Shown piece by piece: positions 7,437 to 49,629 of a DNA stretch of 64,000 bases. Under the pieces are notes generated by a model that was given only the letters and a program-made list of their open reading frames with translations, ran no database searches and had not been told where the DNA came from. Source of the DNA: Marsupella aquatica. Lineage: Eukaryota > Plantae > Marchantiophyta. The stretch lies in NCBI GenBank assembly GCA_973895155.1, contig OZ316899.1, positions 5,025,241-5,089,240 of the forward strand, read 5' to 3'. The translations under genes and the position numbers were made by a program. Positions within the stretch are counted from its first letter, which is position 1; each line of letters begins with the position of its first letter.

Positions 7437-8073
7437 GCCCATCGTTGGTGGTCTTTCAAATTGTCCGAAGTTTTCATTTGTGGTTTTTTGCCTTACTGTC
7501 GGCCTATAATATTATGTTACTTATGGTGGGACTTACCATGTCAATGTTTTTTCCGATGGCATTCATTGGTAAATGTTTGTGTGTCTGTGGTTTTTGGGAC
7601 ACTATTTTCCAGAAATATGTTGGTGATTCCGGACTCACTTATCATCAGACAACAATTATTGTCGTGTTAGTTGGTTCTAAGCTCTAGAATGTAAATGAAG
7701 CGCAATGCATATTGCTTTTTTTCAAATGTATCTGGCTTGAAGTAATGAAGTATTATCCTGTTCCAATGACTAACTTTTCCTGGTAACATGAACATATTCT
7801 TGATAACAGCAAAAAAAATTCTGCTACCAGAATTCCTGTTTTCCTGTTTCCTGTCTCGGTGGCTATATCCGCCATAATGGAGGTTCTTACTTTGCCAAAG
7901 GACATTTGTCATCGATTGGACTATTGGAGATGACAGTGCTTTTGCCACTGGGGAGTATGCAGGGAGATTTGTTATAGGGGTAGAAGATAGACTGAGACAT
8001 TCTTCATTAGTATGCTCAAAAAGTCTGGCCAATGTGTTTGAGAGACATGCCCAGAAGTTGAAAGGGGCCACAA

Positions 8074-8383
8074 TGTTAGGAATTGACTCGAGTTCCCAAC
8101 TTTAGTTAGTTTGGCCTTACTAGGGTTAATTGACCCTTGATTAGGTTAGGATAAGATCCATTTATTTAGGCCCACACATTTTAGTCCCTCTTGGGGGTAT
8201 AGGTTGGAGGAAAAGCATTCTCTCCCTCATTCTTCACATGTTCAATGTCATGAGCTATGGATTCTTCAGGAGTTTCTCCATGATCGTGGTGTCTTATTGG
8301 TGTAGTGTGAGATTGAGCGCTCTCATGTTCCGCATTGCTGTCTAGTCTGGATCCGACAGTTTTCTTACAAGTGATATCAGAAC
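8074..8383 (+). repeat. Copia 5' LTR (TG...CA, 8074-8369) and degenerate tRNA-iMet PBS (8372-8383)
   Basis: TGTTAGG...CTTACA followed by AG-TGATATCAGAAC, against the canonical TGGTATCAGAGC. Confidence 0.7.
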
Positions 8384-22700: not shown

Positions 22701-25690
22701 GAGGAGATGCCGCATCCCACATTGAGTTGAACATTCAGGTAGGGACCTGAGCTGCGCACTGTCAACCATCGAGCAACGACCAAGCTTGGCAGCGCTCTGG
22801 GATTTATCGGCCACATTGACAAAGCGGAAGACAGAGGTGAGTTTGTGCACCGTTAGAGTAACCACGAGTACTCTATTACATGCCTTGTTGTTCTCTATTA
22901 CATGCCTTGTTCTCCCGTCCACTGTTTCCTACGATTTTCTTTCTTCCAGAAGATAATGGTGATTTCTTCTTCAATCAAACAAAACCCCACCCAACCACCA
23001 CCCAAGAACGTGGGGTGTGCGCTACTTAATCCTCCTCAAACTGGCCCATTGTTCATTGAAACCCCATATATTACCCCCCGGCACCAAGGGACTAGTCCCA
23101 ACCTGTCTTCCGCTTGCCACCCTCTTCACTCTCTCGCGCATCTATCTCCCGATATTTCACGCGTAGCCGAGCCCACCGAAAGCTCTCTCCCTACAATCCC
23201 TCCCAAATCCCTGTCCAATACAGGAATGACATGGTTATGTTTTCAATTCCCTGCTTGGATGAGGCGTGGTGTTGCTTGTAATCATGTATTTCTTCACACT
23301 AGAAAAGCAGTCTGTCAGATGAGGTTGTCGGGATTGTCTGTGGGTCAGTCATCTTACGGACACCTAGCAACGTCAAATGAATGGCGGAAACGGGCCATGT
23401 TGTCATTTTGAAATTTGTCTTTCCTTTTGCCATGCTACCCAATCATTTTGTTAGTCCATGAGTCATAGATTCATAGATTCTATGTTTTGTGCTTTGTCTA
23501 GAATGCTATGGCGCCCATGCTACAATTTGTGGTTTTTGTCTAAGCACAAATCCTCTCTGTGCCTGGTCTCTGTGTCCCATCATTTGGATTGATTGTGCAG
23601 ACGTTTCCTCTTCTCCCAGTCCTTGTCATCCACCAGCCAAAGCACATTGGATTGTTTTCAAAGGAGGGCTGTGTAGTTCGGAGGGTTTGATCTATGCAGC
23701 GGATTTGAGCAGATTGGCGGTTGTTAGTTTCTTCTTGTAAAACCTGTCTGTCTTTTCTGCTTTTGGCCATGCTCCTTCACTTCTTGCTGCAAGCTCAATG
23801 TGCTTCAGCTATGGCAATATTCACTTACCCTATCCCAACGGCACTGCCGTGAGCTGTAGGACAGCCAACAGAAGCACTATACAGATTGTATGTAAGTCAG
23901 GGTATTTTATGTATTGCGGAACAACTGTCCAAGTATGCTGCAATGGTCGGTCTTGCGCAGGTGAATGAGCCAATTTCATTTTCCCTGTGCACTTCTATTT
24001 CTCAGAGAATTCCCTGGTCATGCTCATTTCCCCCAGAGTTAGAAAACAAAGAAGAAGAGCTGACTAATTGTAATTCCAATCCATATCCTGATCGGTCAAG
24101 GATTGTTCACTACATTGGCCTTGTCATTGGCTGAGGTCACCAAATTTTGCTTGGTTTCATTCCTGTGGAGCACTGCTGTGATGGATTTGTCGTAGCATTC
24201 TGCAAACTCTCACGGTTTGCTTATGGCCATTATTTGCAATTTGCTGCTACTAATATGTCTTCTTCTGAGCAGCATACACCGGAAGTAAGCAATAGTGGAG
24301 GTTTAACTGCACATCAACACATCCAGTAAACTACCTCTCTGCTGCTCACTGGAGGGTGAGACTTTCACTCTTTCTGGATTGTAGTTTGTAAGCAAGTTGA
24401 TTAGGAGTGTTTCATGCTATGTTTACACTGTGACCCCTAGCTGGAACCAATGGAATGACACAGTGAGTGGGAACTGATAATTTAAGGTTGGTTGCTGTTG
24501 GTGAGGCAAGTACAGCTCCTGCTCACCTTGCTGATCGAAGGTGCTTATCAGAGGACGTGAACACACGACATCTCCACAAAAGCAACACTTATGGTGAGGA
24601 CCTGCAACGCTGAACATGTGCGGCTTGCACGCAAGGCAGAGATGTTGCACCTTGAGTATGTCAGACTTGGGATCCTTCCAGCCCAGTCTGCATGGTACTT
24701 TGAGTACCCAGTTGTTGCCAGGAACAACTACAGCCGGCCTGTACCTGCTTCTCCACCCTTCCCAACATCCTTGGTATTTCTGTCTCTTGTACATGACCCG
24801 CCACAAATTAGGGCCCAAGGGTGTGTGCACAGTTGCCAATATGACTGTCCTGCCTGTAGGGCTTCTGGCCTAGAGTTGGATGACCGTTCTCTTGGATGTC
24901 AGTTTTTTCATAGAGCACAATGTATCATCTGGAACCACTCGCCATCCTGCAGTGTGCCTGGCGATGCCACTTGTCCTGCCCTCCCAGACCCCACCACCGG
25001 TCACTTTGGTGTCTACACATGTTTGGATCACACGCTCTAGAGGACCACTTGTCACACCGCATGCACAAACCAGAGACCATTGACCTATAACTTAACACTT
25101 TGACTTGAACAGAGAGGATATTTACTTAAGATTTTGAATTATGAGCAATTTTGGGTCCAGGGTTTAGGGTCAACAGTACATAACTTATCCTATTATGGCT
25201 GCACTAAGTACAATATCCTAATTTAAGAGGCTAGCAAGCTCACTTAAAAGTCTCCTTTCAAAGACTGAAATTAATGGGCCATGTGATAACCTGGAAAAAG
25301 TGATTTATGCCTAACTTATTTGTCTCATTCACTATCATAGCCTATTTAGGATGTATAAATTACAACCCTGATCACACTGCTTGATACCAATCCTATTCAA
25401 AAAATGTCTGTTTTACATGTCACGACTGTTATATGTGATTCAAATGCATTTAATCTTGTTGCAGATCTCCTTTGGTGAATCATAGCCACAAAATTGAGGT
25501 GTAGGTGGATCAGTTTTTAGTGTGGGTTCAACAAACCAAAAAGTATGTCTACTCTGCACATGTGTGTGAACATTTCATTGCAGTAGCAATTTCCACTCTA
25601 GTCTATATGCTACACTATACTTTTTGTACACTGCTAAATTGTATTGTCTGTGCACTCTGCTAAATTGTACTATCTATCTCATGCGTAGGC

Positions 25691-26370
25691 ATGGCACGCC
25701 CTAAAATCCGAGCCAAGAAGCGGGGCACAGAGGTGAGCAACACAGGTGTAGTTGGGCCAGATGGTAGTAACTTCTCCGCAAGTCAGATTTTCTAGAAGAC
25801 AGCTCATTGTTGTGCCATTTGTGACGATGGTGGGGGCTTAGCCATATGTGAGGGCCCTTGCATGAGGCATTTCCACCTCAACCTGGAGTCTGACCTTGCT
25901 GCAGAAAACAATTGTCCAGGGGTGGGCCTCCCGTCAGCACACCAAGGAGGCTGGATGTGCACTGATTGTTTGGAGAAGCAGGCTAAGTGTGCATAGTGTG
26001 GGAAGTTGGGGTCTTATGAGGGCTCTGTTGATGCTCCACCACTTGTTAGGAATGCCCTGACAGATATTGTGTGAGGTTCTTTTGTTTTTCATGTTTGCCC
26101 GATCTTGCCACAGCTTGCCCACTTCATAAGTGCAAGGCATGTGGTCAGCACGATGAAGATTTCTGGGTGGACATAGTCCACTGTGTTAGGTGTCCCACCA
26201 TGTGGCACTTTCATTGTTTGAAGGAGCGTCAAGCAGAAGGCTATGCTTGTGACAGACACATCTATCATCACTCTGCACATGGTGTTGATCGATGGATCTT
26301 CTATTGTCATCGCCATGCCATAGATCCTACTTTGCACACTCCCATGAGAGATCACATTTCTTGGCTTTGA
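25691..26370 (+). pseudogene. EDM2-type tandem PHD-finger module (cargo of CACTA A)
   Basis: MARPKIRAKKR...CAICDDGGGLAICEGPCMRHFH...WMCTDCLEKQAKCA*CGKLGS...CPLHKCKAC...CVRCPTMWHFHCL...IFYCHRHAIDPTLHTPMRDHISW; two TAG stops and one frameshift near 26050. Confidence 0.85.
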
Positions 26371-26660
26371 ACCTGAATAATGTACATGCATAGTGCACCT
26401 GATGTGGATACCTTGGAGATTGCAGACATTCCAATTTTGAGAAGAAGGACCTCTGTAGGAGAGGATGCTTAGGCAACAAGTACCCTAAGTTCATTACTTG
26501 TTCCTGGGTACATGCCTTCAAAAACTCCCCTTAAGCCTTCTAGGAACTTTTTTTAACTCTGCAATCATTTTGATCACGACTTACATGACACTGCTTAAAT
26601 TAAATCAGGACTTCTCATTATGAGCATATAAGTTACAAGGCTATTTAATTTGCGAGAATT

Positions 26661-26688
26661 CCCTAAACCCTAAACCCTAAACCCTAAA
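26661..26688 (+). repeat. Interstitial plant telomere-type repeat (CCCTAAA)4
   Basis: Direct reading of the sequence. Confidence 0.95.
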
Positions 26689-26823
26689 GTGTACCAACAT
26701 TTTGTATTCTCATTGAATGTCTGCCCATTTACAACATCTGTATGTGGCATCACAAAACAATTGCACTTGTCACCTTCAATATTGTGAAGGCACATATTCA
26801 AACTATGAGGTGCATTCTTGCAG

Positions 26824-27838
26824 GTGTCTAGTACGTTTGTCCCAATATTTCTCCCGTTTGGAATCGGAGCAGAGACTCACCAGACGACTGGACTGGACCA
26901 AGTTATAAACGCAGCATTTTAAGGGCCCTCCGATTATCAGGTGAACGCATTATCTTCCGGTCTGCAGTGATTAGGTGGCCCGTGTGTACATGGCCTCTAG
27001 GAAACGTACAAAGGTTGACCACCCACCTCTGTTGGCTGGAATCAAAGCCATTTTGATTCCTGGCCACTATGGGTTCACCCAAGTGAGTTGGCCAATCGTA
27101 CAAAAATGATTCTCAGAGTTCCATGGGACTGAAGTCAAGGACATCACTCCATAGACTACACATGTTGTTGCGGGGACATGGCTGGATGTGATGAACAAGT
27201 GGTCATGGTCCTTCATTGATTCTGCCATTACCAACCAAGGTCTAAAAGTAGTTGAAGTCTCTTGGCTGACCGATTCTGTTAAACATAGGTGTGTACAGAG
27301 TACTGAGCAATATGAGTTGTGGGAGAGTGAGGAGGCCACTGCAGAGGCTTTGGCTGAAAAGGAAGCCTATGAAGCAGCGACAGAGAAACCCAACTTTGCT
27401 TCTGTCCAATATGGACCTGTTGTCAACATAAGACACCATCCTATGCGTGCAGATGCTATATTGAATGAGCATGGCAAGGAGAGAAATACCATTATGAAGG
27501 GGTTCAGTGTGGTATTTGCAGAAGAAGGAATTGGGGAGACTAAGTGCAGACTGTACAAGTCCATAGTTGTTGAGCTAGGTGGGACAGTGGAGGAGAGTCT
27601 AACAGAAACCTCCACTCATGTTGTAGGTCTGTCATACATGAAAATATGCAGAAAATTCTTTAAGACAATAGTGCGTCATTTTGTCATGAACAACAATCTT
27701 TGGGTGCTTTCCCCTGATTGGCTTCTGGAATCAGCAGCTAGAGGGAAGCGACAGAATGCTTGGGACTTTGATATTTTCGAGGCCTGGCCCTCCAAGATTC
27801 AGCGGAGATGTATGCTTAGCAAAGGTGGGAGAGAGTGA
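26824..27838 (+). pseudogene. Tandem BRCT-domain protein (cargo of CACTA A)
   Basis: BRCT1 LLAGIKAILI...FHGTEVKDITP*TTHVVAG...VVEVSWLTDSV; BRCT2 MKGFSVVF...LGGTVEESLTETSTHVVG...VLSPDWLLESA; several in-frame stops in the 5' half. Confidence 0.8.
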
Positions 27839-28011
27839 GGAGTAGGAGTCCCTCATCTTTTTGTATAAATCACAATTTTGTAATAAATGTGATCCTTGAA
27901 CTAACTCATCTTGTCATGGTTGGTCGCAGTTGAAGTGATTGTTGTTTCCTGCTGCGTGGGGTGTGACTGTGAATCTACTTGCTGGGCTCTGTTTGTCTGA
28001 AGACTTTGGTG

Positions 28012-28548
28012 GGTATGCTGCCTCTTCCAGACCGTCAGGCCCTATGTAGGGTCCTCCTACGGGTTGCATCGTGCATGGCTATTGCTTGGGCTTACTTGTG
28101 TGGATTGGTAACCAGACAGAGTGTAGCTCCATCCGAGATAATGCCTGCAGACCTTGGATGTGTTGTGAATGCTGTGGTGAATGAGGATGCACAGTCCGAA
28201 GAGGACATTTACTTTTCAGCAGATGAGTTAGACAAGCACGATGCTGTAGGTGGTTCCTTGTTGCCTGATTTGGCAGATGATATAGTTCTTACACATGTCT
28301 GGCCGAGGGTTCTTGTGGTGTCTGGCGCACAAGATATTTGCAAATATAGACTAATTAGTACCCAGTGGAGGGACTTGGTAGCAACATGTGCACCATGGAG
28401 GGCACTGCTGCCACTGCTTGTAGGCACGGATCGAAGACCACCATGGCATGAGCAGGGTTTAGACCTTGATGACTTAATGTACATGCCTGAGTACCTCAGG
28501 GCTGAGTGGCATCGACAACAGGATTGGTATCCATATTTGATGTGGTAG
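28012..28548 (+). CDS. Small F-box-like protein (cargo of CACTA A)
   Basis: LLPDLADDIVLTHVWPRV...ICKYRLISTQWRDLV resembles an F-box motif; start codon uncertain (28012, 28075 or 28141). Confidence 0.55.
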   Translation, partial: GMLPLPDRQALCRVLLRVASCMAIAWAYLCGLVTRQSVAPSEIMPADLGCVVNAVVNEDAQSEEDIYFSADELDKHDAVGGSLLPDLADDIVLTHVWPRVLVVSGAQDICKYRLISTQWRDLVATCAPWRALLPLLVGTDRRPPWHEQGLDLDDLMYMPEYLRAEWHRQQDWYPYLMW

Positions 28549-28874
28549 TAAGATGAGGACATCTCACACCGGTCTCGCACCTGGCACCTGTGTCTATGAC
28601 TATACATGATTGGACTCTGATATGGTCATGGATGTACATGCAGAGGCAGTACATGTGAGGACAGCGGAGGAGTTGACACCCTCAAACATTTAGGAATTTT
28701 GTCTCATTCACTTGAGAATAGGTACATGACTCAGGCACCTATATTTTTTGTTTTTTTGTTTTTTTGGAACGTTACGTATTTTGGCAAGTACAGTCGGGGG
28801 TGAAATCCTTAACAGGAAGTGTATTTTTCACTTGCATAATAAAATGACAGGGTGCTGAGTGCGTGTGTATAGTG

Positions 28875-31800
28875 ATGGCTCCAAGGTTGCCTCTTCACAA
28901 CCCATTTAGGATTAGGCATCATGATTCTAAATTGTGGATGCATGAACAAGCCCGGGCCGCCCAAGGTAGGAGTAGGAGGATGAGATGCCCATGCACACAG
29001 TGCCAAGGATTCAAGTCGTTGAGTTTGAACACTGTGCACCTTCACCTGCTGCGGCATGAAAGGCACCCTCGGTGGAGGGTTTGGAATGTACCAGCAGAAG
29101 AAGACTCCTCTGATGAAGAGTGGAGAGCTGACTTTGTGGATTCTAATACAGCTAGGCGTAGAGACTACGTAGAGCAGGACATAGACTGTGCAGAGGATGG
29201 TCCTGGGGTCCAACATGAGAACGTGGATGACCAAGATGGAGATGCAGAGGCAGTCACTGAGGACGGTGGGATGGATGTCCCAAGAATGGTTCAAGAGATT
29301 TTTGAAGACCTTGATGCTTTTTACGACACAGTGGAATCAGAAGAGGACAATGAACCGCAGCCACACATTGGAGACGGCCAAGCTGAACCTGACTTTGACA
29401 TTGGGGAAGGTGCAGCAGAGAGGGAGTGGGTGTTTGGGGGCCCAAAACACATCAAAGAAGCTTGCATTCCTATCTACAAGGGGTCGAACTGCTCCAAGCT
29501 GGGTTTTGTCGTGTTGTTGTTGAACATCTGTGGCAATCACAATGTTCCCAATATATTTGTGACAGAGTTGTTGACCTTCCTGCGCCAAAATGTGTTACCA
29601 GATGGTAATTCAATTCCAAAAAATATGTACGAGGCTAGGAAATTGATGTCTAACCTTGGGCTGAACTATGTGTCTATTGACGCATGCCCTGATGGGTGTG
29701 TTCTCTTTCGCAAAGAGCATGCAGATAAATTGACATGCCCTCATTGTGGTAAGCACAGGTACAAGAATGTAGGGAAATGTACACACCCTGCCAAGGTTCT
29801 TCGTCATTTTCCTCTCATTCCTAGACTACAACGTCTGTTTAGATGCCCTGCCATTTCCAAGCTGATGACATGGACTCCTGATAACAAGAGCAGTGATGGC
29901 CTGCAGTGTCACATTGGAGATTCCAACCATTGGAAATTTGTTGATGAGAGGTGGCCACAGTGTGCTGCAGAGAAGCGGAACTTTCGATTTGGGCTATCAC
30001 TGGATGGAGTAAACCCATTTGGAGACAAAAACAACCGTTATTCATGTTGGCCGGTTACGCTGCTAAATTACAACCTTCCCCCATGGATGACTACAAAGAG
30101 GTTTTTTGTGATGATGGTGCTGCTAATCCCTGGACCAGCTTCTGTGACCGAGCAATTCATAGATATCATGTTGGCTCCAGCAGTGGAAGAGTGGAAGACT
30201 TTGTGGATAGAAGGGGTGTTAACCCATGATGTTCTGAAGGGGCTTCTTCGACCCAGCCCCTTTAGACTGCATGCAATTTGTTTGCTGGATATAGCAGATT
30301 ACCCAGGCCATGGCATCATATCTGGACGAGTGACAAAGGGCTATGTGGGGTGCACACCATGTGGGAAAAATGTGACAAGTGAGTGGTCGCATGCCCTGCA
30401 CAGTATGAAATTCCAGGGGCATAGAAGGTATCTGCCTGTTGATCATCCTTACAGGCACACACGGTCTCAAATTGCACACTTCAACAACAAAACAGAGCTT
30501 CGTGGCCCACCACAGAGGGTCACTAGAGAGCAAGTCCTGAGGTGGGCAGCCAAGAAGGCTGATTGGGACAAGAGAAGTGCCACTGATCAAGAACCTGAGG
30601 ATCCAGTGGTGAAACACTGTGTGAAAAGACAGACCTTGATGGACTTGGAGTTGGAGTACTGGAGGGTAATGTACTTAGCCTCCAGCCCCTGTATGATTGC
30701 AATTTAGATTGGAGCAATGGTGGATTGATGTTGGTTACAATCCTCCTATGTGGTTAATTAGTGTTTCTGTTGTTGAATTCTTTGCTTTGTGGAGTGCAGG
30801 AATTCGAGCCCAGCAAACACAATGTGGACATCATGCACATTGAGAAAAATATTTGTGAGAGTTTGCTGAAGTTCTTGTCGGGTGAGAAAGATACAGGAGC
30901 AGTTCGAGCTGATATGCAACAGAAGGGGATTTTCCCTCACCTTTGGTTGAAGCCCCATGCAAGCAATCCCAATGTACTTCTCAAGTTCCAAGCTCCCTAT
31001 GTGTGCACACGGGATGAATGGAAGACATTCTTGTATAGATTGAGCTGTCTGAAAGTGCCCTCTGGCTATGCTGGTGCCTTCAAGAAGCATATTACAAAGA
31101 ATAAACTTGGCAGTATGAAACACACATGACTACCATGTGTTGATGCAGCACATTCTGCCCCTATGCCTCAGAGGTCTCATGCATAAACCAGTCCGTAATG
31201 TCATTCTTCGACTGTGCAATGTATTTCACCGTATATGTGTGAAAGTGTGGGATCCCCAAGGATTGGAGCAGTTGAAGCAGGATGCTGCTTATGTCCTCTG
31301 TGACTTGGAGATATACTTCCCCCCTGCTTTCTTTGATGTTATGACTCATCTCCTAATCCATGTGGTAGAAGAGCTAGGGCAGTATGGGCCAGTCAGTACC
31401 AGATGGATGTACCCTATGGAGCGATACATGAAGTTGTTGAAAGGTCATGTGAGAACATACTACAGGCCAGAGGCTTCCATGGCATTTGGGTACATTAAGG
31501 ATTAGACGTTGGGATTCCTAACAGAGTACATGGCTGGGTCTGGTGAAGCTATGACAAGAGTTTGGAAATCTGGTGAAGATGATGGAGTGAGTGGCGAGGT
31601 TGTTGAAGGTGTGGGACGTGCTGTTCAGCTGCCTGTTGCGATTCGAGACAAGGCTCATTCATATGTGCTGGCAAACACAGAGCCTATGCAACCATGGTGG
31701 AGGTGAGTGATTGAATTGACTTGCCTTTGTTGTGATGCTTCTTGTCTGTTCCAAGGGTGATCTTAGGTTGTCATGTGTTGTTTAGACCTAACTATGCCTG

Positions 31801-32419
31801 TACCTCATATTGCTGGGAATATGATATGCAAAAAGCTGCACACTCTGGGCAGCAGGATCCCTTCCCACAGTTCGAGCAGTGGATTCGGGTGACAATTCGA
31901 GAGCATAGTAGACATCACCCAGATATGGAGAAGGATTTGTATCTTCTATCTGTGCCACCACGATTGTCTATTCTGACCTACAAACGGATGAGAGCTTATG
32001 GAAATCATTATCGAGTGAGGGATGAGCAGGGTGACCATTGTGTATCATATGATTGTGGTTTGATTTCTGTGTTTGAGCAGAGAACCTCTGAAGAACAGAG
32101 GGGGTGGATGAAGATGGGTTACGTGGGGGAGTTGACTGACATTTGGGTGTTGAATTATGGTAACACAAGTGTCCCAGTGATATTGATGAAGGGATCATGG
32201 GTGAAATCAGAGTGGCAGAGACCAAGGGCCACCATGAAGCGTGATCATGATGGGTTCTTGTTGGCCAATTTTAGGTCCAGAGTACCAGAATGGTCTGAGC
32301 CTTTTGTTTTCCCTAGCCAAGTTGAACAGGCTTTCTTTGCAGATGTGGAGGAGTCCCATGGTTGGAGGGTGGTATGCCATAGCCAAGCACGGAACAGGCG
32401 GATGATGGAAGTAAAGTAG
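28875..32419 (+). pseudogene. CACTA TnpD/Tnp2 transposase (Transposase_21, DUF4218, DUF4216)
   Basis: CPCTQC; IDACPDGCVLFR; LRHFPLIPRLQRLF; LSLDGVNPF; SCWPV...NLPPW; DIMHIEKN; FPPAFFDVMTHLLIH; WMYPMER; EPFVFPSQVEQAFF. Intron 30667-30799; frameshift near 31121; stop at 31503. Confidence 0.95.
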
Positions 32420-38277: not shown

Positions 38278-40229
38278 GACTTCTCTAGTAGCCCAAAGTC
38301 TTGCTAAGACTTGAAGCCTCACACAAAAGAATACACCAGTTAGCTAGTGATATGCAACCCGTGGAGGAGTAGGATCAGGCCGGGGCAGTGCTAGGGCCCC
38401 CGATTGGGGTAATCGCACTTCTAATTGGGACCCTTGTCCCATTGTAGTACAATAGCACAATAGTTTCCGATTGCGAAGTACTTGGAAATGGTCATGCCAT
38501 TCTCACATAATTGGACAATTGTTTGCCATTTCTTTTGAATTGAATGCGTCTTTCCCATACTAGTTAATTGGACAAGTCCAATCTCGGTCCAATAACGCTA
38601 ACCCGATTGTTTGGGGATTGGATGATACGATGCGACTTAAATCGGAACATCGGTAAAAACTGCAACAATCCGCCGAAGGGGTCCAATTTGAGGAGAATTG
38701 GATTAAGGGTGAATTTTGTACTAGTGTATTGGGATAAATACCTGGTCAACGGAGACCCCAGGGCCTTCTTCTTAAGCAGCTTTTTAGTGCACCAGCAAGG
38801 CTGGAATCAGTTAGTAAAGAGAAGCTCTCGGTTAGTTATGCAGTGACCTTTGTGTATATTTATGTTTCCTCATGCCTAAGAGATGAATAAAGTTGGCCTT
38901 TCGGCTTAGTTCGCAGACCTTGTGCATGAGAAGTACTCCTTGTATGGCAATGGCATGGTATACCTTAGTCAGTAGGAGTCATCTTTCTAATTGTGTGTCG
39001 CATCAAGTTGCGTGAAGATTGCCCACATCAACTAAGGAAAGAAAGTAAGTTACAAGCAGGGAGAGTTGGATGTGTTGAGCTAAGAGGGCTCTTAGCAGCT
39101 ACCCAAGCCAATTGGGCATCATTCCGGGGGTGGAATCCAAACATACCTGAAGGAAGACTTATAGAAGAGACGGAAGTGAGGCCTAGAATAAGCCGGGTAC
39201 ATATCTCATGACCTGATGAAGGATCTGTCCAGTATATGTGGTTAAAATGTTAGTACAATAGTGTGAGGAAAGCAGCATCCCATGCAGATAAACCTTGGAA
39301 TTGGCCTTGGCAAGGAAGAAACCAGGGGGAATCGGCTTGCTCAGGGAGGGTTCTTGGGTCCAGAGAGGCATGGGACGCGCCACATTTTTGGCGCTAGATG
39401 GAGGGGGCATTTCTTAAGCCGTGAGATATGGATCTAGGTAAGGAAGTGTAGTTAATGACTGAACCTACACCAAGCACTACTACATATTGGCCCCTTTTGC
39501 GAAGCTTTTTTTTGACGCGGGGATGGTCTTGCGATGTCATCGACTTCAGATATTTTGTGATCAAACACGCATCACAATAAACCATGCTCACAGGTTCGCA
39601 ACATGGTGTTGCGAAGCTAAATACCTCGCAATTTGTTTGAGATCGGATTGAATTCGCAACTCTTTCAGATACTATTCGTCTCGCAAAGTATTTGTGGATC
39701 CGCGACCATCGCGACTGCATTTGGATCTCTTTTGTTTCATAATTTAGCGATAATAATGTACTCAAATATATATTGTGAACCTATTAGCTTCGCACAATAT
39801 TGTGAAGCATAAATAGTCGCAAGTTACCGAATCCAGTTGATTCGCAAAGTTGAGAACACATTGGCATCACAATTACCGATGGTGTGTTATTCACAAAGTG
39901 TTCAGAAGTTGCTTCTTGACAAACTTGAAAATGTTTTGCAAAGAGAGTTGTTTGAAAATTTTGTAGAATGGAAATGTTTGAGAGAGTTTCTTTACAAGAT
40001 GGAGAATGCATGTGTTTAGGTTACAGCTAGGGTTTTCAAAAAGGTGGCATGCATGAGGATAGCTTTGGAAATGGCTAAGGTTGCATATATAACAGTGAGA
40101 TGAAATTTCAAAGTCCAATTAAGTGTTTGTAAAACAAAAGAAGAAAAGTAATATGTTAATATAAATAAAACCATGATAGTTAGTTTAGGGTCAAATTCTG
40201 GGCCCACAACAAGTTTTACTACTAGTGCA

Positions 40230-43200
40230 TCAAACCTGGTCCTCATCCTCGCCTCCATTTGACACAATAATAACGTCAGGTTTTTCCGAGATAATGGAAC
40301 GGGACCGTGGCACATACGGTATAACAACTGACCACTCTAGGTCTGGTGGGTACGGAATATAGAAACACTGCTCAAGGTGACTTGGGAATGTAAATGGTTC
40401 AGATGTTTGCCAATGAGATGGTTGAAAGCTAGTTGCTGATGTCTTCAGTCGAGTAAACCCACACTCATCAAGAAGTACCGTGCGATTATCACCAACCAGG
40501 TGAATTTTGAACCACTTACACTTGAAGACATACTCTTCAAATTTGGAATCGGCATCATAGGATATGATCAAGATCTCCTCAATCTTCCCATAGTGAGGCA
40601 CCACATCTCTGATCACATTAGTGTCATGACGGCTACTTTGTGAATCTTGCATGAACTGCCCTTGAACTCCACAATCAAAAGTTCTTCCCCTCTTCTCATC
40701 AAGGTCAGAAATCCTGAAATGCCTCCCTTGTGTCCACATTGCTGTTCTGGTTTGAACAAGTCTTAAAGGACCATGAACAATTGTTCGAACCTCAGGAGTC
40801 ATATTTGGAAAATGTGATACATTCTCACCTTGGGCCACCATAGCATCCAACTGAAGTACTTTCTCCTTCATATACTCAAGGAACTTTGGAAAGATCCTTG
40901 GGCGATGACTCTCCCTCTTTGCATCCTCATAAAACTCTCTCCAATCTTCCATCACATTGTTGTTACTCAACATGAAAGTACTAACCTGTGTCAACTCCAC
41001 TGCGGTTAGTAAGCGTGTTTTTTTTGCACCTGTTAAACGGTCCTCCTCCACTTCCCTCTCTTCCATCCAAGTGCGTGGAAAACTAGGATCAATGGTAGCT
41101 AAGATGTTACTACAATAAAACATACTCTCAGCTGCCAAGTATCTAGTTGCCATGCTCCCCTCCACTCGTGCACGGTTCCGTACATAAGCCTTTAACACGG
41201 CCATATACCTTTCCAGCCAATACATCCACCTACAATGCACCGGACCGGCAATGGCAACCTCCCTCACAAGATGAACGAGAAGATGCACCTGACAATCAAA
41301 GAAGGAAGGAGGGAGGGCCTTCTCCAACTTGCATACCACCTCTGCTGCCAATACCTCCATCCGTGGTATCTCTTCTTCATATATTTTCTTTGAGCATATC
41401 CATCTCAACAAAGTGCCCAGTGACCAAAGGGCGTCTTGCACTTCTTCACTCCCCAAACCTATGATTGCCACAGGAAGTATATGTTGTAGTAAACGATGAT
41501 AGTCATGTGTCTTGAGATACATTGGCCATTTATGACTGTCCTCCATCCCAAAAGCCTTACGTAGATTGGCACCATAGCCTGTAGGAAACCGCATCTGCCC
41601 TATGCGTTGTCGAAACTCTCTTCTTTCACCAACACTCAAAACCCATGGAGCTGAAGGACGATGTTCCATCCCTGTGGATTCATCAACTGTTATCCATACA
41701 TCTGGATGTCGTTCTAGATCCTGGCATGCCTCCCTAAAATTAATGTTCTTTTCCCCATAAAAGTGCTTGATCAAAGCCTTCCCAACATTTCCCTCTATAT
41801 GCATGGGGTCTAACAAGTGATGAATCTTCAACTCAGGCCAATAGGGCAAAGTGGCCAGTATACCCCACCTTGTCAATCCACTACCATCAAATCCCATGGC
41901 ATCTTCAGGGTCTGCCACCCTATCAGCTATGGACTTCCAATACGAAAATGTTGTGCGGTCAGGTATCTCACGCTCATCACCATTGATCATGTCAAAGTCT
42001 GAAAACAAAAGGGGGTCAGACCTCATGTGATGCCCAAGTGGAAGAAACTTGGTATGACCAAGGTAGATTATCTTGTGCAGCCATTTTGAGTACTTGGCCA
42101 TATCGTGAAGGCTTGGACCACAAGTGGAGCATGCCTTGTACCCTTGAGTTTGGAACCCAGAAACAAACCCAAACCCTGCTCACAAAATAACATTCTCAAT
42201 TAGAGTCAAAGGAATTGAAAAGTTCATGTACATAGAATTAAAGAGGGACTTCCTTCCAAACAAACTTGATCTCCAATACATGAAAAAAATACAAATCCAT
42301 ACCACTCACCTGGATAGTCATGCATGGTCCACATAATGATTCCCTTCAATTGGAAGACACGTGGTAACCCTCCTGTAGTTGTCCGACCATCATATGCCCA
42401 TACACCCCCCCATAATTTATGGAGTTCCCCAACCAAGAGCGCCAAGTAGGTGTCCATGTTTTTTACCTTAGATGGACCTGGGATAATCAATGATAGCAAT
42501 AAGAATCCCTTTTTCATGGACAACCATGGGGGAAGGTTGTAATTCATAACAACCACCGGCCAAACCGAAGTAGGGCGCCCTTTCCCTCCAAGGGAGTGTG
42601 GGCTTACCCCATCTGATGCCAATCCCAACCTCACATGACGAGGGTCACGTGCAAATTCTGGCCATTGTGACTCCACATGCTTGTGAGCAGGGGAATCAAC
42701 TGGCAACCGCATGACACCGGCCTCTGATCGATGTGTCTTATGCCATACCATCAATTCTGCCAAGTCAGAACATCGGTACATGTGCAACAATCGAGGAATA
42801 ATAGGAAACCAACGAACAGCTTTTCTAGGCACCTTTGAGGTCAACATGTTGGTTTCATATCGAGGCTCTTGACAAATTGGACACTCAGTTGCGCTGGCAT
42901 TGGTCTCATGATAGAGAATGCAGTCATTCACACAAGCATGAATGATATGGTATTCCATGCCAATGGATGATAGAACCCTCTTTGCCTCCTTCCAAGTTCC
43001 TGGCAACACATTTTCACTAGGTAACAAGAGATCATGGCAGATAGTCTATTCAAATGAGCACCCCCATAAATAGGTGTTCTAGCATGTCCCTCAGCTTCTT
43101 CCCATTGTTTTTGTCCTTCAGGTATACGTTGAGGCCTTGGATCATGTGCAACATTTGGTGGAGGGTCTCCTTCATTGGGTGGGACACCTCCTTCACCACC

Positions 43201-44734
43201 AATGTCTACACCAAACCAATCTGTCATGAAGTCATCCATGGCTGACTCTTGGTCTTGCATGACCTCATAATCTGTCCGAGGTGCCCCTTCATCTGGACTG
43301 TCATTATCATTGTCACTTGATGAGGAATCTGCTAATGATGTTTCCCCGTCTTGTGGCAAGCCCATTTCTTGATATGTAGCTCTCAACCTCCTTGGCAACA
43401 TATCTTGACTAGGCCGCACATTCTATAGAAAATACAATAAAGTATTCACAATGAAATTAACGCCAAATATAGTAGTGCTTGAAACATATTATTAACAATA
43501 TAAAAAGAACATGTCATTACAAAACATACGTTCACATACGATGAACGTATAATACATGTCCCTAAAGTAATCCTAATCCCATTCATAATGTGTAAACAAC
43601 TCCTCTCCAACCAGAATGGTCCTATTAGCTACAACTAGACAATGGTCATGATGATATCTCTGCCCATAAGGGGCTGGAGGGGGACCATCAACAAAAACCC
43701 ATTCACAGTTTTTCCTACGCTTAGGCCGGGTCCCCACAGTACTGTTGATGAAACCGGCAATATTCCCACTACGGATGGGATCACCATCAATTATACGCTG
43801 GTCACAATACTTTCTGGTGCAACCATCAAAAGTATCCATGTCCAATGCATAAGTCTTCCACTCAGGGTGTTGAACAAGGATCATGTTCCAATGTCTCCTC
43901 TTGTAAATGGGTCCACCATACGGGAACAACGTTGGTCCATCTGAAGAGCGCCCTTTTCCACCCATATCATCCACAATAATGTCCTGACAAGAGAAAATCC
44001 CATACCCATGCCTCTCCCCTAGGGTCGAACTCTTGACAACCCAACGTCTTCCCCAAACTTCTATCTCCTCACCATAGGTTATATCACATGGCAAACCAAG
44101 GCACTCCGGATTCCAATCCTTTATGATAGGAACACACTTCCCTGTGAAGGTACAAGGGCCCCATCTACCATCAACCCTACAAGTGTACTGATCCACTTCC
44201 CCTCTAGGCTGTCTTTTTGACTTTTTTTTCCCTCTTGTAACAATACCGTCACCCTTAATTGTCCCAACACTACCTTGCCCTGCTGCCACTAAACGAAAAG
44301 CTTGTGAAAGTGCCGAGCCTATAGCATCTAGAACTCCTTGTGAGGGAACATAGGGTGTTGGTGTAGTGAGTGTAGGCCTACTGGATACCTATAGGAAGAA
44401 ATGGAACCAAGTGAGTGTGATGAACCTCCCAAATTTTATTTTATGCTACCTAGCAAGATTTACAAAATAAAATGGAAATCACAGTAAGTTTACAACTCAC
44501 CATACGGGATGAAGAAGCTCCCGGTGTAAGACCTCGATGTTGGCCATATCGAGCAATGTGCTCCGCACATACATATGACTTTTGGACAACCATCCCCACA
44601 CATTTTTTACAACCACAAAGTTGGCGTGGTGGACCACTAGGTCGACGTACGGTTGGTTCAGGTTGAGGAGGAGGATGACTTTCTTCATCGGAAGAGAAAT
44701 CTGATGTGGTGGAAGTTGTAGAGGATGAAGACAT
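40230..44734 (-). pseudogene. CACTA TnpD transposase; exons 44734-44501, 43422-42310 and 42175-40230; one frameshifting lesion near 43027
   Basis: IHACVNDCILY; WFPIIPRLLHMY; LGLASDGVSP; YNLPPW; MHDYPG; LDPMHIEGN; LKTHDYH; PPSFFDCQVHLLVH; WMYWLER; EPFTFPSH. Confidence 0.93.
43573..44388 (-). CDS. SET-domain protein exon (putative lysine methyltransferase), open; spliceable to exon 44734-44501 to give 349 aa
   Basis: VKSSTLGERHGYGIFSCQDI (GxG motif), LFPYGG, YALDM, IDGDPIRSGNIAGFINS (RFINH-like) and VVANRTILVGEELFTHYEW (GEELxxxY). Acceptor TTCCTATAG at 44389. Confidence 0.85.
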   Translation of the reverse strand, partial: VSSRPTLTTPTPYVPSQGVLDAIGSALSQAFRLVAAGQGSVGTIKGDGIVTRGKKKSKRQPRGEVDQYTCRVDGRWGPCTFTGKCVPIIKDWNPECLGLPCDITYGEEIEVWGRRWVVKSSTLGERHGYGIFSCQDIIVDDMGGKGRSSDGPTLFPYGGPIYKRRHWNMILVQHPEWKTYALDMDTFDGCTRKYCDQRIIDGDPIRSGNIAGFINSTVGTRPKRRKNCEWVFVDGPPPAPYGQRYHHDHCLVVANRTILVGEELFTHYEWD

Positions 44735-45171
44735 CTGACAAGTATAGCAATTGGAAGGCGATTAGTAAAAACTTCACCAAAACCATCATTGATAATCCCT
44801 ACCTAAACATATTAAAAAGAATTGACAGAAAAATACCTTTATGAGACCCGGGCTTAGCAATGCCTTGACGGATCTTGTGGCTCAAATTTCATGAACCAAA
44901 TCTGGAAGGAGGGGAAAATCTGCCAATATACAATGAATTAAGCCATGCCTTATGGTGAACCAGAAAAAAAGGATGATAGATTGTAACCCTCCATATTTAC
45001 AGCAATGACTAGAAATGCATGAGAAAATGTTATACCTTTCAGATGCCCGGGCTCTCGCAAGGCATTATCATGCATTAGCCAAAACTTTAAAAAACATGGG
45101 GAAGTGCCCTACAACGCCAAAGAGTTTTCCTCTCCATGTTAATGAGATAGACAAAGAAATATAAGTAACCC

Positions 45172-45602
45172 AAACCCTACCCTAAACCCAAACCATGAAA
45201 TGAAACCCTTCATTAAAACCTAACCCAAATCCCTCAATCACCCTAAACCCTTACCCTTATCCTAACCAATACCCAAATCCCTCATTAAAAATTCAAACCT
45301 TTACCCTAAACCCAAACCCCTACCCTAAACCCAAACCATGAAATGAAACCCTTCATTAAAACCTAACCCAAATCCCTCAAGCACCCTAAACCCTTACCCT
45401 TATCCTAACCAATACCCAAATCCCTCATTAAAAATTCAAACCTTTACCCTAAACCCAAACCCCTACCCTAAACCCAAACCATGAAATGAAACCCTTCATT
45501 AAAACCTAACCCAAATCCCTCAAGCACCCTAAACTCTTACCCTTATCCTAACCAATACCCAAATCCCTCATTAAAATTTCAAACCTTTACCCTAAACCCA
45601 AC
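45172..45602. repeat. Tandem repeat, 143-bp unit x3, rich in telomere-like CCCTAAA/AACCC motifs
   Basis: CCATGAAATGAAACCC recurs at 45193, 45336 and 45479; the G-poor tract continues to about 46150. Confidence 0.92.
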
Positions 45603-46598
45603 CCAAATCCCCCAATTACATATAAAACTCTTACCCTATCTACACCTTACTTTACCTATATAGGCCAACCCCCACCCCTATAGTTATTCTAAACTTCACC
45701 CTAACCCCTAAATTGAGGCCCTTTTTTAAAACTTAAGCAAAAATTGTACCCCCTCAATTAGAACCAAATCCAACCCTATATCATGTTACACCCCAATCCA
45801 AACACTTACATTAGAAACCCAACCCCTTTAAAAAAACCACAATTAAACCCCCCAACTAAAAACCAAACCCAATCCCTTTAAAAAACAACCACAATTCAAC
45901 CCCTCAACTAAAACCAAACCCAACCCCTGTAATTACTCACAACCTAATGCAAACCTCTACCTTGAACCCTAAGCCAAACCCATTAATTTAAACCCAACCC
46001 TTTTATTCCAACCTAACCCAAGTTTTAACCCCCTTAATTAAACCAAATACTCCTAGATTAAAACCAAATATAAACCTAACCTTTAATTAAACCCAAACCT
46101 TTGTTAACTTATATTCTAGTTATCCTTACAACCCAAACATCCATTGACACCCCTTCCATGTTAACTTATGGGCACTTAACATACCTTAAATGTCGTTTGA
46201 CAAACCTTAATAGCCGTTTGACACCCCAAAGTGTTTTCCAACCCTAAACCGATAAGACCTGCCTCGCAAATTATTTCACAAGTTAGAGAATATTTTTGCG
46301 AACCTACGACCTTCGCACTTGCTTCGCAAAAACAGAGGCCGAGAACAATTTTTTGGGTCTTCTGCGGGTTGCGATGGCTTTGCGAAGGGAATAGATTCGG
46401 AAGTGCCTCGCAAGTTGCGAGACTATTTGCGAGGGCGCGGGCTTCGCAGTTTCCCATGCGTATGTCATCGCAAACCCGTTTTTGAACGGCGTAAACATCG
46501 GCGGGAGCTCGCATTCGGGCTCATTTCAGTTTTTGAGCGAGACGAGAAGGGCCGGGGCGCGCGCAACAGTACGAGGGAGACTGTGAGAGAGGGGAGCT

Positions 46599-48575
46599 AT
46601 GGCTACCGGTGAGGGGAGTGGAGGGCAAGGTGGTAGTGGTAGTGGTAGTGGCAATGGGGGAAATCCAGAGAAAGAGAAGAATGCCTGGGCAGACTTAGTG
46701 GCCCAACATCTCAGTGCTGCACAATTGGGAGAAGTGAATCTCAATTCTCCAGTAGGGCTTGCCTCTTTGAGTGCCATTCTTGGACAGGTTTTGCAAACTG
46801 GGATTGTAGCAGGACAAGCTACTAGAGAGGGGGAGGAGAGGGCCGCAGCTGAAGAGAAGGCTAGAGAGAAAAAAAGGAAGAGAGAGGAAAGAACTAAGTC
46901 AGGAGTTGCCTCTCCTCAAGCCCTAGAGAAGCAGAAGAGAAGAGAGGAGAGAGATTCAATTCGAAAACAAAGGGAGGAGCAACGTCAGAAAGAGGAAGCA
47001 AGAAAAAAACTTCCATTCATTGCCTTGGAGACGAGTGGGACTCCAACTGAGCTAGCATATGCAGGGGCTAAGAGCACAATCAAGCAGATTATCACAAGCA
47101 ATTTCTCACGAGGCATGCAGTGGGGGAAGATTGAGAAGGCAGAGCGAAAGAGGGTCATCAACCAAATCAAGGATGCATTTCGCAATGGGCCTGACATAGA
47201 TGAGCAATGGTTGGCAGATAAGATTTCAAATTCTATGTCTCAAATGCGATACCATGACAGGATGAAGATTAGAGCCCACCTGAAAGACTTGAGATCATAC
47301 AAGAACTTGTGCAGACCCCTCCACTTCACCGAGGACATCTGGAATTTGTTTTACAAGATTGAGGTGCAAATTAAGGCAGCTCACGAGTTGGAAGAGTGGA
47401 AGGGCAATCTAGATCGAGCCTTGAAAGCAAAGGAGGCCGGGAAGCTCCCCCCTGACCACGACCTAAAGCCACTTGAGCAGAAGGTAGCTGAGATGCAGAA
47501 GGTGGCCGACCAGGAGGGAAAGCCACCCAAGCGTTTCACAGATGCAACCAAACAAGTGAAATCCACCCCCAATCCAGTCCACAAGTTGGGTCAAGGCGGG
47601 CTCCCCGGCCTCAAGTCACACTTTGTGAGTGCCTCTTGCTCCTCCCTAACCTCTCTATTCCTTTCAGAGTTGTGCAATGCAAGTGAATGACATCCCCGAA
47701 GGTTCTTGCTGTTGTGCATGCTTGCTTGGTTACTAGTTTAGGGCAACTCTGACACTTAGAATTTCTGGCAAATTTTTAAAAACTCTCGGGAACACAGTTT
47801 GCGAAGGTGTTGCGATGCGTATTTGTTCGCAAACCCCTCGCAAAGTCTATCATAGACTTTTTCCATTTCAATTTTCCGATGCCTTTGCGAACAAATGCGC
47901 ATCGCAAACTCCATCGCAACGCCTTCGCAAAAAAAGGTGGTTCGCAAGTTGCTATGCTTATAGGTTCGCAAATTTGAATTTTAAATTTTTTTTGGGTCAT
48001 GTTTAGTAGTTGAGGATTTAGGCGTCACTTGTGGCTATAGGGTATGCTTAAGGGCAAATTTAACCAATTTTAATTGGTTTTATGCATGGCAGTATCGGAG
48101 GTACAAAAGGAAGATATCAAAAAAGCATATTGAGGTGGCGATAGAGCATGGACGAAAGTACCTCTTTGCGATGGTAGATGCCGAGTTGGCTACTGTAAGT
48201 GTCTAAGTGTGAACCATATGATTAGCATGCGAACATTGTGAGTGACCCTTTATGTCTTGCGGAAACTAATGATATGTAATGGATGCAGGATTCGGATGAG
48301 CCTGAGGGGTCGGGTGCTGATGTGACCAGTAGTGATGACGATGAGGGGGCTACTCCTGGTACTAGTGGTGCTCGGGGGGGGGGAGTAGTCGTGAGGTAGG
48401 TTCTTCCCACCGTGGTAGTGGTGGTAGTCGTGTGTCATCAGCACACGTTGATGACCAGGGGGAGGAGGAGGACCCTGAGGATGAGGAGGAGGAGCAGGAG
48501 GGGCAGGAGGAGCCAGAGGAGCAGCAGGAGCAGGAGCAGGAGCGCCGACGGCCATCACGCACCCATCACCAATAG
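46599..48575 (+). CDS. CACTA TnpA-like gene of element B (exon 1 46599-47624; further exons near 48093-48194 and from 48289); 3' part probably degraded
   Basis: Coiled-coil/NLS region; W..I...ER..VI..I; RP....DIW; VHKLGQGG followed by a GTGAGT donor; acidic downstream exon. Confidence 0.65.
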
Positions 48576-49629
48576 GATCCCCGGAAGGATAAGGGCAAGA
48601 AGCCAGCCAAGAAGCCAACCAAGAGGAGCCGCAAGAGCCCATTCTAGTTATTTTGTAGAGATACATGCATGAGAGTGACTTGTCATGCCGGAGCTTAGGG
48701 TAGGAAGAGGCAGCATAGGTTTAGAAGGGCGGACCTAGCATCAGATATTTCCCCCCTCTTGTCCATGTATAGGGTTCTTTGAAGCCCTATCATTTTGTTC
48801 ATGCTTTTCCATTTTATAAAACAACAATTTTGCCTTCCACATTGGGTTCCAAGGAAAACCCCTCGCAAATAATGTATTGAATCCTGTGTGATCATAATTT
48901 TGCGAACCCTTTAAGAACTCATTCCCATCGCACAATATTAACCCCAAGGCGTCGCACTTTTTGAGCCAATTAACTTCAGAACTTCAGATCCAAATATGTC
49001 GGGTTTTTGTGATACTTCTAGGATCGCACTTTCCTAATCGCAACCGTTCACAAACTTCTGAAATCACCGGTATCGCTCTTTGTCATACAATCCCCATCAA
49101 AACAATTGAACCAGTATCAATCGCAAATATGATGCGATGGTAAATCCATCTCAAATATTGACGCCCGCGCGGGACGTGTGTGTGTATGTTTGTGAACCTT
49201 ATGCGACGTATAATGGATCGCAGAAGTATTGAATATTGCGAACCTCTCAGCTTCTCAGTTTGCCATGATGTTGCGATGCCGTTGTGATGGTCCGCGTGCG
49301 AAGTTATTAGGTTCGCAAAGTGCGAAGGGGGTGCGATGCGCGTATGTTTGCAATAGCCAGAATTATGAAAATCAGGGGCTTGTTAGTTGCGATGAGATTG
49401 TCTTCGCAAAACCGGCCGATAGTGTTGTAGTGAAGGGAGGAAAGAGCGATACAACGGGAGAGAGCTCGTTTGCAGCAGATCGTTGGGTGGTAGGAAACAC
49501 AGCGACTGAGAGGAGCAGATAGAGCTAGTAGCTCTGTAATAGAGAGTGGTGTTGAGGAGGAGGAATTAGACAAAGGATCGGTTACCTGGAGTCCGTTGAA
49601 TTCAAGTGTTAGCTCCCCAACAAAGAGTA

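Follow-up and report, generated by a model that had tools for sequence, protein, structure and literature searches.

The 64,000-nucleotide stretch of the liverwort Marsupella aquatica analysed here (contig OZ316899.1, positions 5,025,241 to 5,089,240 of the forward strand; hereafter the window) contained a complete CACTA/EnSpm transposon whose TnpD-type transposase gene appeared to carry, inside its first intron, an exon coding for a SET domain, the fold of protein lysine methyltransferases. We hold with high confidence that this SET gene is encoded by the element and is under selection, and sequence comparison supported the exon as an integral and selected component of the element. On balance, we favour the explanation that the element belongs to a high-copy CACTA/EnSpm lineage of bryophytes, in which one long gene would yield two proteins that share a promoter and the first coding exon. 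This exon 1 encodes a serine-rich and acidic head and a C-x-C-x2-C...H zinc knuckle, the front of the 'transposase-associated' domain. Its splicing to a near acceptor at 44388 would produce a 349-residue zinc-knuckle-SET protein with its own conserved stop codon. Splicing to a far acceptor at 43422 would remove the SET exon together with intron 1, and the product would be the TnpD transposase. The sharing of exon 1 and the choice between two acceptors are the part of this explanation that we consider probable from the comparison of gene copies. We infer both splice events, the termination of the SET message, and the activity, substrate and N-terminal targeting of the SET protein from the sequence.

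The gene was located on the minus strand. An initial annotation of the window had proposed a first exon with a GTGAGT donor, two phase-0 CTATAG acceptors and a 271-residue SET exon, and the coordinates, frames and motifs of all of these were confirmed. Coding exon 1 (44501..44734, 78 codons) encoded the sequence MSSS...LCGCKKCVGMVVQKSYVCAEHIARYGQH...GASSSRM, with a serine-rich and acidic N-terminus and the zinc knuckle C-x-C-x2-C...H...G, and was directly followed by the donor GTGAGT at 44500. The ATG of exon 1 was positioned immediately 3' of an AG (…TTGTCAG/ATG). In Pfam, exon 1 matched the Transposase-associated domain (PF13963) below the threshold (16.7 bits, cut-off 27.7) at profile positions 36–64, and its zinc motif was kept in eight lineages. 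A 112-nucleotide (nt) intron (44389..44500, GTGAGT...CCTATAG) separated exon 1 from the SET exon (43573..44388), which consisted of 271 sense codons and a TAG stop codon (43575-43573). The near acceptor, CCTATAG/GTA at 44389/44388, opened the SET frame, and the acceptor's own TAG closed this frame on the 5' side. The earliest methionine of the SET frame was residue 148, inside sequence that was already conserved. Between the SET stop codon and the second acceptor was a 150-nt spacer (43423..43572, minus strand), which was AT-rich, poorly conserved and intron-like, and which would be the 3' untranslated region of a SET message or intron sequence in a TnpD message. The far acceptor at its end, TCTATAG/AAT at 43423/43422, opened the TnpD frame. 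The three boundaries at 44501, 44388 and 43422 were in phase 0. The spacer also contained a hairpin with an 11-bp stem and a T-rich run (43525-43551, minus strand), 22 nt past the SET stop codon. The hairpin was not kept in the Calypogeia or Sphagnum spacers, and the bacterial-type promoter and terminator scan is not meaningful for a plant.

The remainder of the gene encoded the transposase. The acidic TnpD exon 2 (43040..43422) was followed by the exon with the Transposase_21 domain (42310..43039; donor CCAG/GTGAGT, with intron base 1 at 42309), a 134-nt intron with an intact junction (42176..42309) and the last TnpD exon (40230..42175), which encoded DUF4218 and DUF4216 and remained open until a TGA at 40232-40230. 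The TnpD body matched the Pfam families Transposase_21 (E = 1.3e-39), DUF4218 (E = 2.5e-33) and DUF4216 (E = 4.3e-6). With Calypogeia and Sphagnum copies as the reference, exon 2 was shortened by a 76-nt deletion (junction 43040/43039) that shifted the TnpD frame and left the Transposase_21 exon out of frame with exon 2. This deletion was the sole lesion detected in the TnpD of the window, whereas the SET frame was uninterrupted, a difference that had already been pointed out in the initial annotation. Contigs of other genomic copies had additional sequence at the deletion point (loose ends at 43034/43039). Within the last TnpD exon, the window had a single continuous open reading frame (ORF) of 623 codons (40233-42101). 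In the protein alignment, the corresponding region of a Sphagnum jensenii copy (L002, 12641-14821) was interrupted by two gaps of approximately 150 nt (13168/13324 and 14193/14339), which suggests that introns in the last exon are present in one of the two lineages and absent in the other.

A word-indexed protein search with the SET frame returned 41 relatives at E ≤ 1e-3, whose sources were without exception bryophytes or metagenomes of peat and soil. At the sequence level, the similarity of the SET frame to these proteins is far above chance. The best relatives were from Calypogeia fissa (67–69% identity) and Sphagnum species (approximately 63%), and the clusters contained up to 360 members. 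A full HMMER search with the family profile, which covered 1.84 billion representatives, gave matches to 128 clusters. Proteins from the source 'SRC' were from soil metagenome and were not transcripts. For motif and Pfam counts, 44 family members were selected; 38 of these matched the Pfam SET family at E ≤ 0.01 and none matched any other Pfam family.

The layout of the gene was conserved among the relatives. Copies from Calypogeia (L001) and Sphagnum jensenii (L002) contained exon 1, an intron of approximately 105–113 nt, the SET exon, a spacer of approximately 150–177 nt, TnpD exon 2, Transposase_21 and DUF4218, in this order. The same layout was present in three lineages of Riccia sorocarpa (L004, L005 and L010; assembly from PMC11923412) and in Logan/ENA contigs (L003, L007, L046 and L047). 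The introns between exon 1 and the SET exon were approximately 104–113 nt long in the relatives, with GTAAGT donors, …ATAG acceptors and equal phases. The zinc-knuckle exon and an …ATAG/GT(A/G) acceptor recurred wherever the upstream DNA of a relative was present. Donor, acceptor and phase were kept down to a SET identity of approximately 40% (SET identity of L007, 44%; of L047 and L048, 40%). In a census of 34 loci in peat metagenomes, exon 1 was found upstream of the SET exon in 20/20 loci and TnpD downstream in 17/17 loci, counting those with enough DNA on the respective side. All relatives with genomic context had the SET ORF directly 5' of TnpD in the same orientation, save one orphan, a single-exon protein of 503 residues from Calypogeia fissa (P0118; L011, 8001-9512) whose N-terminus was cysteine-rich and whose SET domain had 30% identity to the transposon family. 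No TnpD was present within 8 kb of this orphan and the word-indexed search returned no relatives for it; it might be a derived form or else a relative that resides outside the transposon setting. The TnpD frames of L001 (11809-12531) and L002 (11296-11679) were broken, with one in-frame stop each, a selection effect since these copies were chosen by their SET models.

The comparative anatomy favoured a product that joins exon 1 to the SET exon. Two annotated models, P0001 (351 amino acids) and P0003 (343 amino acids), consisted of exon 1 plus SET joined at the proposed junction (…GASSSRM/VSSRP…). The conserved coding sequence began at the acceptor itself (VS[SR]R...), and the window, L001, L003 and L007 had no ATG ahead of the conserved SET sequence. 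In one relative (L006, protein P0064; 433-1704 of a contig of Logan run SRR33386717), a zinc knuckle, a linker of approximately 200 residues and the SET domain formed a single uninterrupted, intron-less ORF of 423 codons. Since it is one ORF, this zinc-knuckle-SET protein requires no splicing. The same run also held the intron-containing type (L003), and 130 nt downstream of the L006 ORF was an acidic ORF resembling TnpD exon 2, behind an AG acceptor. Long models from Riccia also had the zinc motif at their N-terminus.

Alternatively, the SET exon might be a nested gene in intron 1 of the transposase gene, with its own promoter or start codon and no exon in common with TnpD. In Sphagnum copies, an ATG occurred a few codons past the start of the SET exon, where the Sphagnum magellanicum model P0008 begins, so that independent translation of SET is possible in Sphagnum. 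Three further points weigh against the proposed splice choice. The exon 1 junctions are read from DNA and not from RNA, the four sequence-bearing runs being genomic contigs in which neither junction was present. A protein search based on TnpD found no annotated model that joins exon 1 to TnpD exon 2, and no AATAAA/poly(A) signal was shared among the spacers that were compared. A nested gene is nevertheless unlikely. In the window, Calypogeia, L003 and L007, no ATG precedes the conserved sequence and a stop codon stands just 5' of the acceptor; donor, acceptor and phase are conserved to the limit of SET identity given above; and L006 and the long Riccia models carry the zinc knuckle on the SET protein itself. 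For its SET half, a shared exon 1 is favoured by splice sites, phase, missing ATG and L006. The splice of exon 1 to TnpD is predicted on two points only, namely that the zinc knuckle, the N-terminal hallmark of TnpD-type proteins, occurs nowhere else in the gene, and that the phases fit. We continue to regard a shared exon 1 as the better reading of the gene.

Three automatic models (P0027, P0110 and P0209) joined part of the SET exon to TnpD, as expected if an internal donor bypassed the SET stop codon and produced a single SET-transposase polypeptide of the SETMAR type. These models truncate the SET domain ahead of its catalytic C-terminus. Moreover, the stop codon was found 2–12 residues past the catalytic tyrosine in 37/43 members and in all lineages, and there was no conserved donor at the end of the SET exon. 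Because the SET stop is conserved, the gene of the window is not a fusion of this type, and we consider such a product very improbable. A SET-TnpD fusion was also rejected since no open frame led from SET into the transposase.

We then considered the SET exon as part of the transposon. The SET segment as a separate, nested insertion was ruled out: there was no terminal inverted repeat (TIR) or target-site duplication (TSD) of its own bracketing it, and in the relatives it was flanked by exon 1 and TnpD. The G+C content at third codon positions (GC3) of the SET exon was 0.39, between the values of the adjoining exons and not anomalous. In four genomic runs (X1–X4, from two organisms and two studies), contig depth summed across the SET exon was approximately equal to that across TnpD, although depth is not copy number. 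Few joints were present, at low depth (e.g., 43782>44190 and 44112>44871), and these point to derivatives with internal deletions. Nothing indicated that SET is lost in most copies. Over the window positions 40000-45500, the summed contig depth was very high, with values between hundreds and more than 100,000, and identity was ≥99% for many contigs; depth and near-identical contigs point to a young, high-copy family.

The ratio of nonsynonymous to synonymous substitution rates (dN/dS) was under 1 for all parts of the gene when the window, Calypogeia and Sphagnum were compared. It was 0.19–0.29 for SET (bootstrap limits 0.12–0.40), 0.10–0.15 for the TnpD core, 0.22 for exon 1 and 0.42–0.45 for the acidic exon 2. 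For orfP, a separate gene of the element described below, it was 0.13–0.15. Synonymous divergence (dS) between lineages was approximately 1.0–1.2, which counts against a strict interpretation; these values are rough because dS is near saturation. Among 24 copies, dN/dS of SET depended on divergence: it was 0.74–0.92 at dS < 0.2, 0.44 at 0.4–0.8, 0.23 at 0.8–1.5 and 0.17 above. This pattern is expected of a gene that is important to the active lineage while single insertions decay. Of the copies from metagenomes, 5–6 of approximately 16 near-full metagenomic copies were intact and the remainder had one or two stop codons, with no frameshifts. SET very probably encodes a real protein, which is maintained by lineage-level selection on the transposon.

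SET and TnpD also diverged together. Pairwise identities of SET and Transposase_21 were correlated (r = 0.92; seven lineages, 21 non-independent pairs). Maximum-likelihood trees of SET and TnpD concurred on every supported group, which were {window, Calypogeia, Sphagnum}, the Sphagnum clade and {Riccia a, b}. Since the trees agree, the data fit a single old acquisition of SET followed by co-inheritance, and not repeated capture.

CACTA elements capture fragments of host genes, and the SET exon might be such a passive fragment in the style of Pack-CACTA, with no function for the element. Most single copies do carry stop codons. Yet the SET frame is open and its motifs are kept among lineages at 30–45% identity, dN/dS is well under 1 at depth, SET co-diverges with TnpD, and GC3 is not anomalous. 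No host parent was found among the 1.84 billion representatives, and TnpD was present beside all context-bearing relatives but the one orphan. A captured pseudogene was rejected on the missing host parent and the between-lineage dN/dS of SET, and a passive fragment is hardly credible.

The SET exon was next compared with known SET proteins. The predicted SET domain was verified by a match to Pfam SET (PF00856) with 24.7 bits, above the gathering cut-off of 22.4 (E = 3.4e-5). An AlphaFold model of the SET exon, based on a 44-sequence alignment deepened by HMMER matches, had a predicted local distance difference test score (pLDDT) of 85.5 and a predicted template modelling score of 0.73; a 12-sequence alignment gave a pLDDT of only 37. 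With Foldseek, the model had at least 320 matches in the PDB at E ≤ 1e-3, and all matches listed were SET methyltransferases. The top hit among the matches listed was LegAS4 (1.7e-7), followed by SET8, MLL1-4, ATXR5, G9a/EHMT1, EZH2 and SETD2. VIA-align matched model residues 72–271 to Set1, EZH2, SET7/9, ASH1L, SET8, LegAS4 and NSD2 (Z 11–12, root-mean-square deviation 2.3–3.0 Å over 124–135 residues). No SET subfamily was assignable since these scores tied. A shallow-profile sequence search of the PDB gave nothing at E ≤ 1, and the only full-length matches of the family profile among solved structures were to Legionella LegAS4/RomA (E = 3e-6). The SET exon had no NCBIfam match. Its residues 1–65 comprised a conserved helix and then a basic cluster (e.g., RGKKKSKRQPR), followed by the SET fold at approximately residues 72–271. 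The basic cluster is plausibly a nuclear localisation signal. It suggests that the SET protein would be nuclear, and its target would most likely be chromatin at the element or transposition proteins.

Most catalytic and cofactor positions were conserved in the family. The GxG motif (G128 in 43/44, G130 in 44/44), the asparagine positions (N215 in 39/44, N227 in 44/44) and the ELxxxY motif (E263 in 43/43; Y268, the catalytic tyrosine, in 41/43) were kept, and Y162, Y180 and N209 were also conserved family-wide. The GxG glycines, E263 and Y268 aligned with their counterparts in LegAS4. In the window, the C-terminus read ...GEELFTHYEWD before the stop codon, ending three residues past the tyrosine with a cysteine-free tail, and FINS replaced the canonical (F/Y)INH, as had been noted from the letters alone.

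Several observations speak against an active enzyme. The Pfam SET score was barely above the threshold. The canonical histidine of the NH motif was missing, with a serine in its place in 42/44 members. There was no post-SET region: the tail past the tyrosine had a median length of 6 residues and was at most 12 residues long in 37/43 members, and only two tails contained cysteine. The SET protein might then be a catalytically dead pseudo-enzyme or decoy, selected for binding, e.g., a repressor that competes with the transposase. It could bind, for example, to histone tails, to S-adenosylmethionine (SAM) or to the proteins or DNA with which the shared N-terminus associates. The substituted histidine, the short tail and the very weak profile scores against solved SET domains would all suit a decoy. 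Transposon repressors that arise from alternative splicing use a shared N-terminal module, and the 66-kDa repressor of the P element is an example of a repressor made by alternative splicing. The other catalytic and SAM-binding positions are nearly invariant, including the tyrosine, for which a pure binder would have no use.

Known enzymes also argue against a decoy. RomA/LegAS4 actively methylates H3K14 and depends for this on GxG and the C-terminal tyrosine (PMC10653858), and it has YINFS where the transposon family has [YF]INS. Since LegAS4/RomA also lacks it, the NH-motif histidine is not universal among active SET enzymes. The viral protein vSET is active without a post-SET region, as a dimer (PMC3914023). 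The serine flagged in the initial annotation was thus real, and the altered catalysis that it had hinted at was weakened by the conservation of the serine in the family and by the active LegAS4/RomA (PMC10653858). A further point against activity is that SAM binding by the LegAS4 SET domain is poor once this domain is separated from its partner domain (PMC10653858). By analogy, the transposon SET protein may need a partner or dimerisation for activity, or activity may be absent. Taken together, a decoy appears rather unlikely. From sequence and model, we consider the SET protein most likely to be a divergent, minimal lysine methyltransferase without post-SET that binds SAM and is competent for catalysis; for catalytic activity in particular our preference is slight.

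A further step would be that the zinc-knuckle-SET protein is drawn to copies of the element by the N-terminal module that it shares with the transposase, through binding to TTCGCAAA repeats and/or the orfP protein. There it would write a lysine-methyl mark on local nucleosomes or on transposition proteins and so alter the epigenetic state of the element, and the splice choice would switch the element between 'mark' and 'move'. We offer this as a tentative extension, and as a whole it is doubtful.

The element that carries the gene was complete. It extended over 9,958 bp (39475..49432, minus strand with respect to the TnpD/SET gene), with the termini CACTACTACATATTGGCCCCTTTTGCGAAG (39475, plus strand) and CACTACAACACTATCGGCCGGTTTTGCGAAG (49432, minus strand), and CACTAC…TTTTGCGAAG was present at both ends. 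It was flanked by a 3-bp TSD, AAG in direct reading (left 39472..39474, right 49433-49435). The termini were identical in the Sphagnum (L002) and Calypogeia (L001) copies. The subterminal 8-mer TTCGCAAA occurred in 15 copies, with approximately 2 expected and 15 reached in 0/100 shuffles; the copies were concentrated at the element ends and on both flanks of orfP, and the 8-mer was also found in L001 and L002. The CACTA termini, the 3-bp TSD, the TnpD-type transposase and the subterminal repeats place the element in the CACTA/EnSpm superfamily. The window copy is intact in structure and its transposase is dead.

Divergent from the TnpD/SET gene was orfP (46599..47690, plus strand), an intact ORF of 363 codons that was rich in lysine and glutamate and matched no Pfam or NCBIfam family. 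It was present in L001 and L002 with 52–56% identity and was always divergent from the TnpD/SET gene. The orfP product is a candidate second protein of the element, probably DNA-binding and TnpA-like. The promoter or intergenic region (45167..45706, minus strand) contained a tandem array of three 143-bp units, in which 11 telomere-like TTTAGGG motifs were oriented like the TnpD/SET gene. In the same position and orientation, L002 had nine copies of the motif (6592-9757) and L001 had two (8636 and 9257); the motifs may represent promoter elements of the telobox type. Neither the Rfam scan nor the tRNA scan gave a match in the transposon. A second CACTA element in the window (approximately 24500-32400, plus strand) was distant (Transposase_21 38% identical) and had no SET exon, and a simple pattern search did not find the zinc-knuckle motif 5' of it.

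Transposon-encoded epigenetic modifiers are rare, with VANC of VANDAL elements, TET/JBP of fungal elements and the SET/DNA methylase cargo of Plavaka as examples. The transposon family described here appears, from its sequences, to make its own chromatin-type enzyme. It is a canonical CACTA lineage of land plants, common in mosses and liverworts, that has kept SET over the long term as a built-in part of its transposase gene. Bryophytes and flowering plants differ in the histone marks on their transposons. If the SET protein is active, the family would be a tractable system for studying the manipulation or exploitation of histone methylation by a DNA transposon. If the proposed splice choice is true, it would be a second, independent case of two proteins from one transposon gene. 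If the self-targeting reading is true, it would be a sequence-targeted, self-directed chromatin-writing system in a land-plant DNA transposon.

A similar known organisation is that of maize En/Spm, in which one transcription unit gives rise to TnpA and TnpD through alternative splicing. Both have CACTA termini, a 3-bp TSD, subterminal repeats and a TnpD-type transposase, and in both, by prediction here, two proteins would come from one promoter, with one coding sequence within the first intron of the other. Unlike En/Spm, the alternative product of the window gene would be a SET protein and not TnpA, and the coding first exon would be common to both products. The candidate second protein of the window element, orfP, is a separate gene in the opposite direction, and splicing is predicted only. 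SETMAR likewise combines SET and transposase at one locus, joined through splicing. It is a single-copy, domesticated primate host gene that encodes one fusion polypeptide, whereas the family of the window is multi-copy and TIR-bounded, with its own SET stop codon.

As enzymes, LegAS4/RomA (PDB 5czy, 8swi and 8sr6) and the transposon family share GxG, the asparagine and the catalytic tyrosine, and in both the NH-motif histidine is replaced. LegAS4/RomA differs in that it is an effector secreted by a bacterium and contains both ankyrin repeats and a post-SET segment; identity is only approximately 22–25%. The vSET protein of Paramecium bursaria chlorella virus 1 is also a minimal SET protein of a mobile genome without post-SET, and it is active on histone H3 (PMC3914023). 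In contrast, it is viral, has 119 residues with no N-terminal extension or zinc knuckle, and was not among the fold matches listed.

SET genes have been described in other DNA transposons, namely in HarbingerS and oomycete MuDR elements (Kojima and Jurka 2014, cited in PMC12730594) and in Helitrons (bioRxiv 10.1101/2025.02.11.637652). These also are DNA transposons that encode a gene of the lysine-methyltransferase type. They differ in superfamily and host, and the SET genes are stand-alone accessory genes with, as far as the cited descriptions go, no reported exon in common with the transposase. The initial annotation had held that no CACTA-encoded SET was described. Full-text literature searches found no published land-plant CACTA/EnSpm element with a SET exon; the claim does not hold for the superfamily, since red-algal Plavaka elements (EnSpm/CACTA) carry a SET gene (bioRxiv 10.1101/2025.02.11.637652). 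In Plavaka, PAG2 combines an N6-adenine DNA methylase with SET as a separate accessory gene, in elements of 17–19 kb with two more accessory genes, and the authors propose that this cargo modulates chromatin (bioRxiv 10.1101/2025.02.11.637652). Like the family described here, Plavaka is a CACTA-superfamily transposon with a SET cargo conserved over long evolutionary time. Unlike PAG2, the window SET is a lone exon in intron 1 of the transposase gene of a canonical land-plant TnpD element. No methylase domain was found, SET being the sole Pfam family in the window protein and its 44 relatives; the window SET is set apart from PAG2 on the basis of the published description. What is probably new here, judged from the gene copies, is the combination of a bryophyte host, a canonical TnpD lineage, a SET protein with no methylase, and a SET exon placed in intron 1 of the transposase gene that probably shares its exon 1.

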